Source: Perkinsus chesapeaki ATCC PRA-425 (lineage: Eukaryota > Protista > Perkinsozoa). Taken from it: a DNA stretch of 46,588 nucleotides. The translations under genes and the position numbers were made by a program. The notes under the pieces were generated by a model. That model did no database searches, was not told where the DNA came from, and worked only from the letters and a program-made list of their open reading frames with translations. This document shows, piece after piece, positions 32,273-37,364 of the stretch (position 1 is its first letter; each line of letters opens with the position of its first letter). The DNA lies in contig JAAPAO010000252.1 of NCBI GenBank assembly GCA_013115145.1, forward strand, positions 1-46,588, written 5' to 3'.

Positions 32273-32874
32273 TGCCAATGGTATTCTATGATGAGCGTAT
32301 AATTCAGAATCATTAATTCTCTTGCAGGATTTAAGAGAGACTAGTCTTGTGTTAGTGTACTGTTAATAGCTCCCACTTGGATACGGCGAAAGCGCACTGT
32401 ATCGTTTTCCAAATCACTCCGCCGGAATGATTCCGGGCTGAAGACTCCATTATGCGAGTCTCGATTATTGTGTAATGAATATCAGACGGGTAACAATACG
32501 TGTTATAATTGAATCGTGAGGATTCGAACTCTCCTATATAGAGCAGCACCCAGATGACATAGATGGTCACTCAGGTTAACTCCTTAAGCTCCTGGTGTAT
32601 CTCGTAAGTAACCCAGTTTAGTTGATTAGCCGCTTAGAAGTCAAGCCACTGCACTCAACGCATCGCCGTGGAAGTCTTTGGGAAAGCTTGATCAAAAAAG
32701 CCTTCATTATTAGCCTTTTCGATAACCATTCATTCTACCTGTATCGTGCCGTACTCAAGTTGATAAGTTGCCTTAATATAAAATTTGATAATCGAAACCC
32801 ACTGTTCGCTACGCTTGTGTGAAGTGTAGGATCAAGAAGGTTTCACAAACGCGATATAGTGTAACTCATGACCT

Positions 32875-34245
32875 TCATAGCAGGTAGCGCACAAAAGTTA
32901 TCCACGTCTCGTCCCCTGAAAACATATAACACAGTATGATGTTACATGGGGATTCCATACTGGACATCTGGTATCTTCGACATCGCTTACTTTTAATTTC
33001 TTCAAATCCTGTCTTTTTATAAAGGGCGATCGCTGGCTCGTTTGTAACTAGTACTATGAGATACATAGCAACAACCTTGGGCATATCCATTCTTATCTGA
33101 GTGAGATATGTTGTGTGGGTGTTATCAATTATGAACTCCCAGAAGTCCTGAACAGGTTGCATCAATGGGACTCACGTCCAGATTTTTTTTCTCTATAAGA
33201 TTAGTGGCGATCCCTTTTCCGCGCCACTTGGTCACCACGAAAATCTGACAAATATCAGCAACTAGCAGCAAAACTGTTGAGAAAGTTGAAGTTCCCCTGC
33301 TATGGCGTAATTTACGCTGCGTAAAATATCGATCGGCCTTCCCGGAGCCCTGATCACCAGCGGAACATCGGTGCTACATCGTACGGAAGTTTGGGCCCCT
33401 GTCACTGTCAGACTGACACTATAGCTCGCCGCAGCATACCACGGCAGAAAGCAATGTACATATCAAAGGCACGTTATTTCATGCGCCAGATACTGAAAAT
33501 GCAGATGTTATACCCTCGATGATATCGTGGTAGAGATAGTAGTCTAAGGACTGATATCACAGTTTAGAACTCAAAGTGCTGCGAAAGTTTCATTGGTAAC
33601 GCGACGAGAAGGCAAAACCCTATTTTAGGGAGATGGAGGGCGGCGAAGTCAACATCAACTCACATAATCAATGTAGCCGATTAGGCCATCCCTTTTTGAG
33701 GGCGGACTGAAATGAAGAAGTGTGGTGAGCCTCACCAGGTGAGGAAGCAGGTGCGGTTATGTGGGCCACACATTGGGGGAAGTGCTTACACTTCAGCCAT
33801 GATGAGCTCCTTCAATTTCGGTCCTATTTCCTTGTCGGGTATATGCATCTCGATAACACCAACAACCGTCTGAAGACAAGTAAATTAATGGGACGCGGTC
33901 TCGTAATTGCATTATAGCCGCCTTATGGCATTTGCCATTAGTCATGGCCCATGACCGACAGCCCAGCGCACCAAGCTCTTCAAATACAATGATAAAACTC
34001 ACGTGTGGACTATCCGACTTGTCTATGGCCACGTAGCATATCTCATCGTGGTCAGCGCAATCATACACGGGTCCCGATTTCAGCTTGTCACCATCTTGAT
34101 AGTCCCTGTAGATGATGTCATTCTGTTGGAGCTGCTGCTGTATGGGATCGGAGAAACCGGTGAGATTGTATAAACGAACTGCATCTCCTTTGATGAGACC
34201 AACAGCAACAGCACTGAAGAATAGCATACTCAAAGTGGGGTTCAT
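32875..34245 (-). CDS. GNAT acetyltransferase with N-terminal signal peptide, copy 1 (193 aa, 6 exons)
   Basis: Exons 34003-34245, 33790-33869, 33664-33706, 33176-33244, 32991-33096 and 32875-32915 are all GT-AG and in phase. They give ...CYVAIDK..TVVGVIEM..GYIDYIFVVTKWRGKGIATNLI..NEPAIALYKKTGF.. Confidence 0.88.
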
Positions 34246-36066
34246 TTGATTGAAAGCCTCTAAGGTGACTTCGCTGAAAGGAAACCCTGAGCATTCATCC
34301 GTGAGCTAGCTGAGGAGGGAGAGTCAAGTGCAGCGAGCATGTTCACTATTATTCAGTAATAATCACTATTCAGGGTCGTTACGACCCTAAAGTTCAGGGC
34401 CTGAACAAAGTACGGCACTCTTTGTTATTGTGAATCGGGCTCTGATGTGTTGTATGCAGAAATTCCGGTTTTTAAAACGCAAGCGTCCTCACAAGATGGG
34501 TCAATAGTAGATGTGTCAAACAGTGAACCACTAACAATTCCTTGTCACGACATCAACTTTCTCAACTAAATGATGAATACTACTAGCCGTACAGCGTGGC
34601 GCAGCAAACTGTCTCCACAGGTGAACGGATGCACATACAGCGTCTAGTTTCAGAAATAAGCCGGGAAGTCGAAAAGCGAGAAAAATGATTGTCAATATTC
34701 CATTCCCAGGGAATAAGGGAAGATTGCCGGGAAGAATGTGGGAAGGAAGGGAAATTTAGCCACGCTGCAGGACGCGAAGTTCTGCTCGAAAGGAGCGTAA
34801 GCTCACTTCGGAGCCCCCGGAGCGGGAGGTTCCGGCGGAACCGTTCAGCATTCACTAGGAAACCTGCTAGCCCCAGCTGTGCTCGTGCAAAGCGCGTGGC
34901 CTACGAAGTACCGTCGGCTACTAATAGTAGCCTACCATATGGAACAAACGTACTGACGAACCTTTGTCGGGAGTTTCAACTTGAAGCTTACAAAGCTCAG
35001 AGGGAGCCGCTCCGTTACGGAGCGCTATCCTGGAGCGCTCCCCGATTAGAAATCCTAATTTAGATCTCGGCGGCATTTATGTGGCTGAATCGGTCGGGCT
35101 GATGTGACCCGGGTTTCCCACTGGAAGATAGGGAACTAACACGTCAATCTTTCATCGATGTTTGTTCATGACAGCTCATGCTGTGTCAACTTGATATCGA
35201 TCAAGAGAGAGCGAATATTCAGACACCGCAGTGTTGGTGTTGCTGGCCGAAAGCTTCCTGCTCATCGTGCTAAATTAGCGTTGCTAATCGTTGGAATAGT
35301 ATATTGTGGATGAATAGATTGTCAATTTTCCTTCCTAGATTTACGGAAACGTGATAATCGTATTGTAGTTTCTCCACGTCGTTACGAGTTGGGACTTCCA
35401 ACCAAATCTGCTCGACTTTAACAATAGAAGTAGACGGCTCTCTATGTAATAACCACCCGGCAGTCAGGGCCACCACTCTTAAACTCACGAGTCAATCATA
35501 ATCCGTCAGATTCATTAATAAGATAAAATTCAGACTGAGAGCATGAAGGATTGGAACGGAGTAGGGAGCTGACATGAGCACACTCAGAATCTCCACTCTG
35601 AGCCACTTGAACTCGTTATGGAGCTTACTATTTGAATATTTAGCTGTGGGGATTCTAAAATTACTATCAGACGGGTAACAATACGTGTTATAATTAGATC
35701 GTGGGGATTGGAAGAATCTCTCTCCTATATAGAGCAGCACCCAGATGACATAAATGGTCACTCAGGTTAACTCCTTAAGCTCCTGGTGTATCTCGTAAGT
35801 AACCCAGTTTAGTTGATTAGCCGCTTAGAAGTCAAGCCACTGCACTCAACGCATCGCCGTGGAAGTCTTTGGGAAAGCTTGATCAAAAAAGCCTTCATTA
35901 TTAGCCTTTTCGATAACCATTCATTCTACCTGTATCGTTACATACTCAAGTTGATAAGTTGCCTTAATATAAAATATGATAATCGAAACCCACTGTTCGC
36001 TACGCTTGTTGTGAAGTGTAGGATCAAGAAGGTTTCACAAACGCGATATAGTGTAACTCATGACCT

Positions 36067-37364
36067 TCATAGCAGGTAGCGCACAAAAGTTATCCACGTC
36101 TCGTCCCCTGAAAACATATAACAGAGCATGATGTCTCAATATTGGTATCCCCGACATCGCTTACTTTCAATTTCTTCGAATCCTGTCTTTTTGTAAAGAG
36201 CGATCGCTGGCTTGTTTCTAACTCGTACTTCGAGAGAGATAGCAACAACCCTGGGCATCTCTTTTATCTGAGTAAAATAGGATGTGTAGGTGTTATTGAT
36301 TACGAAGTCTAGAAGTCCTGAATACGTTGCACTAATGGGACTTACGTGTGAAAATTTTTTCTCAATAAGATTGGTGGCGATCCCTTTCCTCTCCCACTCA
36401 GGTAGTACCTTGACCTGACAAATATCAGCAATTGACAGTGACACTTTCAAGAGAAAAAAGTTCAACTCTTAGAATAAATCCCTTGGAATAACGGAAAATC
36501 GCGATCAGCGTTTCCTGACCCCTGGTGGCCAGCGGAACATCGGTGCTACATCGTACGGAAGTTCTGGCACCTGTTACTTTTAGACTGACGCTATAGCTCG
36601 CCGCAGCATGCCATGGCAAACCGCAATGGAATGTACATATCGAAGCCACATTATCTTTCGCGGGAAATCTGAACATACTGGCGTTATAACCTCAATGGGG
36701 TGGTGGTGAAAATCGTCAGTGGCTTTAGATCTAACATCACAGTTGAAGTGCTGCGTCAGTTTTTAGGGAGGCAGATGGAAAGCAGCGAATTCAACTCACA
36801 AAATTTATGTAGCCGATTATGCCGTCCTTTCTTGAAGGTGGACTGAAATAAAGAAGTGTGGTGAGCCCCACCAGGTGAGGAAGCAGGTGCGGTTATGTGG
36901 GCCGCACCTTGGGGGAAGTGCTTACACTTTAGCCATGATGAGCTCCTTCAATCTCGATGTTAGGTAGGGGTCGGGTATATGCATCTCGATAACACCGAGA
37001 ACCGTCTGAAGGTATGTGAATTAATGAGATGCGGTCGCGTGATTGCATTATAGCCGCCTTAGCCATGGCCCATGACCGAGAGTCCAGTGCATTAAACTCT
37101 TCACAGAATGATAAAACTCACTTGGGGACTGTCCGACTTGTCTACGGCCACGTAGCATATCGCATCGCGTTGAGCGCAACCAAGCACAGGTCCAAAATTC
37201 ATCTTGTCACCATCTTGATAATCCCTGTAGATGATATCATCCTGTTGGAGCTGCTGCTGTTTGGTATCGGAGAAACCGGTGAGATTGCATAAGCGAACTA
37301 TATCTCCTTCGATGAGGCCAACAGCGATAGCACCGATGAATAACATACTCAAGGTGGGGTTCAT
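36067..37364 (-). CDS. GNAT acetyltransferase with N-terminal signal peptide, copy 2 (192 aa, 6 exons)
   Basis: Exons 37122-37364, 36926-37005, 36800-36842, 36346-36414, 36165-36267 and 36067-36107 have the same phases as copy 1. Motifs GYINFVKVLPEWERKGIATNLI and SLEVRVRNKPAIALYKKTGF. Confidence 0.88.

Follow-up and report, generated by a model that had tools for sequence, protein, structure and literature searches.

The window analysed here spans 46,588 nt of the genome of Perkinsus chesapeaki ATCC PRA-425 (contig JAAPAO010000252.1, positions 1 to 46,588). P. chesapeaki is a parasite of clams, and its genus belongs to the myzozoan alveolates, with dinoflagellates and apicomplexans as relatives. 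On the minus strand of the window lie two tandem paralogues, copies A and B (Table 1), that encode GNAT-type acetyltransferase domains behind a hydrophobic leader. Both copies are intact. Each comprises six exons separated by GT-AG introns of the same phases, and the duplicated unit measures ~3.1–3.2 kb. A scan for donors of the form GTRAGY finds exactly five in each copy, at positions homologous between A and B. The spliced reading frames are open—582 nt (193 aa) in B, 579 nt (192 aa) in A—with exon lengths of 243, 80, 43, 69, 106/103 (B/A) and 41 nt and entry phases of 0, 0, 2, 0, 0 and 1 in both. An original prediction, made from the letters of this stretch, had proposed two tandem copies with the same in-phase six-exon structure. 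The donors, open frames, phases and alignment to the family bear it out, and the peptides it quoted are found where it placed them, on the minus strand.

Aligned as six separate in-frame rows, the exon pieces of each copy tile full-length family proteins in order, with neither gap nor overlap. Among these proteins are P0002 and P0018, paralogues modelled by NCBI, and P0013, which is the product of an MMETSP transcript from a paralogue on contig C2904. Because P0013 is a transcript product and the pieces tile it, all five junction positions are backed at the RNA level for a paralogue. The acceptor of intron 4 reads CTCAG/ATAAGA in B and CTCAG/ATAAAA in A; the intron is 79 or 78 nt long, and the 1-nt difference between the copies falls within it. 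In five more distant paralogues exon 5 begins IRQTMPK, after an intron of ~65–100 nt with the same GTRAGT donor, and the downstream acceptor is also backed by two annotated proteins (P0002, and P0001, the product of a third close copy described below) and by the transcript-derived P0013. Splicing to the internal AG, which would make the intron 28 nt long, keeps the frame of B open but brings A straight to a TAG, and was rejected; paralogues, annotated models and the transcript product use the downstream acceptor. An additional exon inside the long intron 3 was rejected as well: the exon 3/4 junction already restores beta4 and the acetyl-CoA loop, without gaps with respect to the family and to the N-terminal acetyltransferase (NAT) Naa60.

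Table 1. Exons and selected introns of the two GNAT genes (positions in the window)
Feature	Position	Strand	Remarks
Copy B, complete gene	32875..34245	-	ATG to stop, six exons, 193 codons and stop
B exon 1	34003..34245	-	Leader MNPTLSMLFFSAVAVGLIKG, acidic/Gln-rich linker with NLT sequon, then first GNAT strands (IIYRDY ... C-x6-CYVAID)
B exon 2	33790..33869	-	TVVGVIEMHIPDKEIGPKLKELIMAE; strand beta3 and beginning of long beta3-beta4 insertion
B intron 2	33707..33789	-	83 nt
B exon 3	33664..33706	-	PPSKRDGLIGYIDY; beginning of beta4, with Tyr aligned to Arabidopsis Naa60 Tyr (taken as Tyr97 equivalent)
B exon 4	33176..33244	-	IFVVTKWRGKGIATNLIEKKNLD; acetyl-CoA pyrophosphate loop R-x-x-G-x-A
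B intron 4	33097..33175	-	79 nt; misleading internal AG at 28 nt
B exon 5	32991..33096	-	IRMDMPKVVAMYLIVLVTNEPAIALYKKTGFEEIK; beta5-alpha4 (motif B); Ile at Naa60 His138 position
B exon 6	32875..32915	-	DETWITFVRYLL and stop; last strand; identical to A exon 6
Copy A, complete gene	36067..37364	-	ATG to stop, six exons, 192 codons and stop
A exon 1	37122..37364	-	Leader MNPTLSMLFIGAIAVGLIEG, linker with NLT, first GNAT strands
A exon 2	36926..37005	-	
A intron 2	36843-36925	-	
A exon 3	36800..36842	-	
A exon 4	36346..36414	-	VKVLPEWERKGIATNLIEKKFSH; acetyl-CoA loop, Arg shifted by one as in expressed paralogue P0018
A intron 4	36268-36345	-	78 nt
A exon 5	36165..36267	-	IKEMPRVVAISLEVRVRNKPAIALYKKTGFEEIE; Glu at Naa60 His138 position, as in archaeal Ard1
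A exon 6	36067..36107	-	Includes stop

The leader shares exon 1 with beta1 (IIYRDY) and beta2 (CYVAID) of the GNAT fold instead of occupying an exon of its own, and neither A nor B has a Met after residue 7 and ahead of beta1, so any complete domain carries the leader. The hydrophobic leader with an NLT sequon that had been predicted ahead of the domain is present, in frame with the domain and sharing an exon with its start. Similar leaders occur across the family. They were judged by inspection and simple counts in 28 N-termini, drawn from ten loci and four database proteins, and then from 20 further loci of which 16 held the module. The first ten loci, the four proteins and 14 of the 16 all have a Met followed by an uncharged hydrophobic core of 10–17 residues and by small residues at -3/-1; examples are IKG, VKG, AQG, TRG, SAS, TRA, SSA, AAG, VSG, STA and ASA. 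The n-region is neutral or basic, and the 15 residues past the core are neutral to acidic, with a net charge of 0 to -4. In most paralogues beta1 begins 1–3 residues past the predicted cut, which leaves no room for a transit peptide. The subfamily of A and B has, in addition, an acidic/Gln-rich linker of ~24 residues that carries the NLT sequon, conserved in the three closest copies only. A plastid transit peptide was considered and rejected, as the original prediction had anticipated from the segment after the leader: the linker is short, acidic and missing from most paralogues. The family also has an invariant pair of cysteines (C-x6-C), one immediately ahead of beta2 and one where that strand begins; Arabidopsis Naa60 has a Ser opposite the second, and the mature part of B has no other Cys. 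Short core, charge bias, cleavage motif and cysteine pair together point to a cleaved Sec-type signal peptide and a lumenal or secreted domain, and not to a cytosol-facing anchor. In one member (C1272:35072-35278) the open frame seems to begin MSDGVAYRWY and to hold no hydrophobic leader; this member is either leaderless or has its leader on an upstream exon.

That a complete GNAT fold is assembled across the exons, as had also been predicted, follows from a profile score, from motifs and from the tiling. An open piece of A made up of exons 4 and 5 with the unspliced intron 4 between them, in frame, scores 25.1 bits with PF00583 (Acetyltransf_1), above the gathering threshold of 20.7; full-length paralogues score 30.7–49.7 bits. 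Taken singly, the short exon pieces of B score 13.5 and 15.3 bits, below threshold, and the same pieces tile the family alignment. The acetyl-CoA loop R/Q-x-x-G-x-G/A is present as W-R-G-K-G-I-A in B and as E-R-K-G-I-A in A, where the Arg is shifted by one as it is in P0018. Motif B (beta5-alpha4, N..A..LY.K.GF) is present as NEPAIALYKKTGF in B and NKPAIALYKKTGF in A. Since the exon pieces tile the family in order, and the exon 4-5 piece of A passes PF00583 alone, the assembly is more than chance.

The nearest relative of known structure is Naa60. A profile of the family alignment, including the exon pieces of A and B, was compared with all PDB sequences: Arabidopsis Naa60 (6tgx) comes first, at E 3.6e-14, with an alignment unbroken through the beta3-beta4 insertion, and archaeal Ard1, Naa30, human Naa60 and Naa50 come next. 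An AlphaFold2 model was made of the paralogue P0002 (mean pLDDT, the predicted local distance difference test, 81; residues 1–34 disordered), and Foldseek places human or Arabidopsis Naa60 at all of ranks 1–7 in the PDB. Both results apply to the family as a whole. Naa60 is distinguished from other NATs by a long beta3-beta4 loop, and its catalytic residues are Tyr97 and His138 (PMC7790372). The P0002 model has ~26 residues, including a helix, between strands 76–84 and 111–120, and exons 2-3 align with the Arabidopsis insertion with gaps of 1–2 residues only. The Tyr of G-Y-I, in A and B alike, aligns with the Tyr of V-Y-I in 6tgx. The C-terminal amphipathic membrane-binding helices of Naa60 are absent; the proteins end 12–13 residues past exon 5, at the last strand. 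A look-alike search of the ESM Atlas returned generic GNAT clusters, with Naa60 clusters among the structural neighbours, and UniRef automatically names two paralogues N-alpha-acetyltransferase 60. The family is probably a NAT-type GNAT derived from Naa60, yet one that fails several of the features by which Naa60 is defined.

The family is large. A census had been suggested alongside the original prediction, and the profile made for it from seven exon-1 peptides was searched against 1.84 billion representative sequences and against the 41.7-Mb assembly from which the window comes. The profile finds the family at no fewer than 36 loci of this genome, a lower bound that may include haplotigs. 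Among the representatives there are 14 matches at E <= 0.001. The named matches of family type all belong to P. chesapeaki, P. olseni or P. marinus; what is left consists of Logan contigs and of four proteins of 572–1107 aa that are hit in 6–8 separate stretches, and that we took to be spurious. A word-based search with a whole-family profile gave no strong relative outside Perkinsus among at most 8000 candidates, which is weak evidence, and literature searches gave no description of a leader-bearing Perkinsus GNAT family. Judged by these searches, the family is specific to Perkinsus and expanded there. P0005 (P. olseni KAF4681716.1, 389 aa) joins the first, N-terminal two thirds of one family member, with leader and GNAT start, to a subtilisin domain. 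This is probably two neighbouring genes merged in the model; if so, a family member would adjoin a gene for a secreted protease in P. olseni.

Copies A and B share 73% amino-acid identity, with undamaged frames and splice sites. Their non-synonymous (dN) and synonymous (dS) divergences are 0.163 and 0.276, a dN/dS of 0.59; changes per site amount to 0.147 non-synonymous versus 0.231 synonymous, and by a two-proportion estimate the synonymous excess has p ~0.03. This indicates that the two are under relaxed but real constraint. A third close copy lies at C329:1158-2511, on a 4.2-kb contig. Exon 6 and ~400 bp downstream of it (32467-32942 and 35652-36134) are 96–100% identical between A and B, versus 88% to the third copy; in exon 1, the identity of B is 90% with the third copy and 78% with A. 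Such a mosaic suggests that the tandem neighbours have undergone gene conversion at the 3' end. Confined to the three close copies, the 3' flank is no dispersed repeat. The third copy itself is degenerate. Exon 1 has lost 12 nt, the acetyl-CoA loop has lost G-K-G to a deletion of 9 nt, and exon 5 is shifted through an insertion of 14 nt. The copy is annotated all the same, with an alternative splice that keeps the frame open, as the P. chesapeaki hypothetical protein FOL47_001269 (P0001), in which no Pfam match was found. It may be a pseudogene or a haplotig.

Copies A, B and the third copy (C329:1602-1684) share 95% identity in intron 2 (83 nt), whereas the flanking exons of A and B are only 84% and 79% identical; the core of intron 3, near TTCCGTACGATGTAGCACCGATGTTCC, is conserved too. 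A relic of a non-coding RNA or tRNA was considered for these elements and gained no support, Rfam giving no match at E up to 1 and no tRNA being present in the region. The fold of intron 2 is no better than that of shuffled sequences (z -0.68), and within the genome the element is confined to the three close copies. Its conservation could reflect a conversion tract or a splicing signal.

The immediate surroundings of A and B are uninformative, the neighbouring open reading frames of the window having no Pfam matches. Elsewhere in the genome, at C431:7194-7614, is a homologue of the acetyl-CoA transporters of the AT-1/SLC33A1 type (PF13000; 66.7 and 35.2 bits). These are the only PF13000 matches in the genome, and a leader-bearing paralogue of the GNAT genes (C431:22577-22819) lies ~15 kb away. 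Elsewhere on the minus strand of the window, ~200 bp from a tRNA-Leu(TAA) gene (11570-11653), ARAGORN reports a 'tRNA-Stop' of 70 nt whose anticodon is TTA (11292-11361); it could be a decayed copy of the tRNA-Leu or a suppressor-like tRNA.

What might such proteins do? We think it reasonably probable that they carry a cleaved signal peptide and act in the lumen of the secretory pathway as acetyl-CoA-dependent acetyltransferases, most likely on the amino groups of proteins. The nascent chain would enter the endoplasmic reticulum (ER) by way of its Sec-type signal peptide of ~20 residues, which would be cut after I-K/E-G in A and B and at small-x-small sites in the paralogues. The invariant C-x6-C pair would form a disulfide, and the mature enzyme, soluble and ~173 residues long, would use acetyl-CoA imported into the lumen by the AT-1/SLC33A1-type transporter. 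Amino groups of secretory cargo would be acetylated, newly formed N-termini of secretory proteins being the likeliest targets; this would precede or accompany the enzyme's own onward transport, which we would expect because the proteins have no ER-retention tail. A narrower version, that these are soluble lumenal N-terminal acetyltransferases that modify N-termini exposed by signal-peptide or maturase cleavage, is tentative, and we would sooner doubt it than rely on it. The structural half of the secretory-pathway GNAT first proposed for this locus stands, in that the leader is in frame with a complete domain and similar leaders recur across the family; the functional half lies beyond that result.

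Several observations weigh against a lumenal acetyltransferase of this kind. A collection of 5.8 billion proteins yielded neither a transcript nor an annotated product for A or B; B exon 1, searched there with a length window set by a 150-aa open reading frame, matched only P0001. P0013 begins at an internal Met downstream of the leader, so that even in that paralogue the leader is without RNA-level support. Naa60, the nearest relative, acts at the cytosolic face of membranes. The equivalent of its His138 is not kept: YLHV of 6tgx is YLIV in B, SLEV in A, and YLDV, YLVV or YLMV in paralogues. Alignments to PDB proteins begin at beta2, at profile position 60 or later, and so do not take in the alpha1-alpha2 segment, which in NATs makes up the wall for peptide binding; the beta1-beta2 connector ahead of beta2, ~19 residues with one 6-residue helix in the P0002 model, cannot be aligned to Naa60. 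With that connector unalignable and the catalytic His replaced, the acceptor may be something other than a peptide N-terminus.

Three other explanations deserve consideration. The enzyme might be secreted by the trophozoite once its leader is cleaved and act as an exported effector on host proteins or amines, in the parasitophorous vacuole or the clam haemocyte, at the expense of host acetyl-CoA. The expansion fits such a role, being lineage-specific and often in tandem across its 36 or more loci, as do the rapid divergence of neighbours (73% identity, dN/dS 0.59), C-termini such as RYLL, ARYHF and similar that lack a KDEL/HDEL-type tail, and the presence of the family in all three sequenced parasitic Perkinsus species. 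Against this, acetyl-CoA is not available extracellularly, we know of no host-translocation signal or machinery in Perkinsus, and literature searches gave no secretome or proteomic report of these proteins; nor does a dN/dS below 1 give any overall sign of diversifying selection. We regard an effector as unlikely. A membrane-anchored, cytosolic equivalent of NatF we regard as more unlikely still. Here an uncleaved N-terminal anchor would replace the C-terminal helices of Naa60, and the enzyme would act at the cytosolic face of the Golgi or ER on the N-termini of membrane proteins. The kinship with Naa60 in sequence and fold, the UniRef names of two paralogues and the loss of the C-terminal membrane segment all agree with this, and cytosolic acetyl-CoA would serve with no transporter required. 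But cores of 10–17 residues are short for spanning a bilayer, and their flanks, neutral to basic ahead and neutral to acidic behind, would by the positive-inside rule put the C-terminal domain in the lumen. The conserved small-x-small cleavage motifs argue against an anchor too, as does the invariant Cys pair, which is absent at the aligned site of Arabidopsis Naa60, and 36 copies or more would be unexpected for a housekeeping NAT.

It could also be that other members of the family are functional and that A, B or both are unexpressed pseudogenes, duplicates on their way to decay. They are neither annotated nor matched by a transcript product in the protein collection, their closest relative (C329) is visibly degenerate, and B has Ile at the catalytic His/Glu position. 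Decay nevertheless sits badly with uninterrupted frames and ten intact splice sites at a dS of 0.28, with non-synonymous change significantly rarer than synonymous, and with intact acetyl-CoA motifs. We consider it very improbable.

The Perkinsus proteins resemble Naa60/NatF (human 5icv and 5hh0; Arabidopsis 6tgx and 6th0) more than any other enzyme of known structure, in profile and in fold, through a shared beta2-beta7 core. They have in common the long beta3-beta4 insertion, the beta4 Tyr, the acetyl-CoA loop and the helix N-x-x-A-I-x-L-Y-x-K-x-G-F. There are also differences. The Perkinsus family has an N-terminal leader of signal-peptide type in place of the C-terminal membrane-binding helices; Ile (B), Glu (A) or Asp, Val or Met (paralogues) in place of His138; and a beta1-beta2 connector that is short, unalignable and marked by the conserved C-x6-C. 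Naa60 is a single gene, whereas Perkinsus has many copies, and Naa60 works at the cytosolic face, whereas the Perkinsus proteins are predicted to be lumenal. Archaeal Ard1/SSO0209 (4r3k, 2x7b, 6ag4), the second-best PDB sequence match, is alike from beta4 to beta6: its YLEVRVSN corresponds to SLEVRVRN of copy A, including the Glu, which stands at the position of the Glu127 named in PDB titles of mutants. Ard1 is cytosolic, with neither a leader nor a long beta3-beta4 insertion. A Naa60-like NAT with a signal-peptide-type leader is, so far as the sequence tells, a variant on a known kind of enzyme. Copies A and B add two members and a corrected gene model to the family, not a new kind of enzyme, and what we say of them beyond the sequence is inference.

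Lumenal GNATs are known from mammals, where NAT8 and NAT8B (ATase2 and ATase1) are ER-lumenal, membrane-anchored lysine acetyltransferases fed by AT-1/SLC33A1. The Perkinsus genome likewise encodes a PF13000 homologue of that transporter, but NAT8 and NAT8B are membrane-anchored and are not among the nearest relatives found for the Perkinsus family. N-terminal acetyltransferases, for their part, are described as cytosolic enzymes of the ribosome or of membrane faces. The original prediction held that GNATs are normally cytosolic, nuclear or organellar; taken to mean that none occurs in the secretory pathway, this premise is too strong: an ER-resident N-acetyltransferase of Apicomplexa, TgNAT8/Pf3D7_1437000, has been described, and its GNAT domain is predicted to lie on the lumenal side (PMC10038149). 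N-terminal acetylation is reported for secretory proteins of Plasmodium and Toxoplasma, malaria export cargo among them, but Pf3D7_1437000, the TgNAT8 orthologue with two transmembrane domains, is probably not the enzyme responsible; the lumenal NAT is still unidentified, and a signal peptide is missing from every NAT candidate of P. falciparum (PMC10038149). Compared by description only, TgNAT8/Pf3D7_1437000 and the Perkinsus proteins are alike as GNATs of myzozoan parasites predicted to face the lumen of the secretory pathway. They differ in that two transmembrane domains, and no signal peptide, are predicted for Pf3D7_1437000, whereas the Perkinsus proteins look soluble, with a cleavable leader. 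Neither the exon-1 profile, searched against the 1.84 billion representatives, nor the word-based family search has an apicomplexan relative among its matches, and NAT8/NAT8B and TgNAT8/Pf3D7_1437000 are not among them either. The Perkinsus family does not, therefore, identify the apicomplexan enzyme, since no orthologue was found outside Perkinsus.

What the family offers is a candidate example of a lumenal NAT in a lineage related to Apicomplexa. If its members do prove to be lumenal N-terminal acetyltransferases, they would be the first identified enzyme class for the secretory N-terminal acetylation seen in Apicomplexa. Perkinsus marinus is described as transformable in a preprint (bioRxiv 10.1101/2021.06.11.447996). 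Mammals pair membrane-anchored GNATs with AT-1; dozens of NAT-like enzymes behind predicted signal peptides, together with a transporter homologue, make Perkinsus a testable example of how a lumenal activity could be built.

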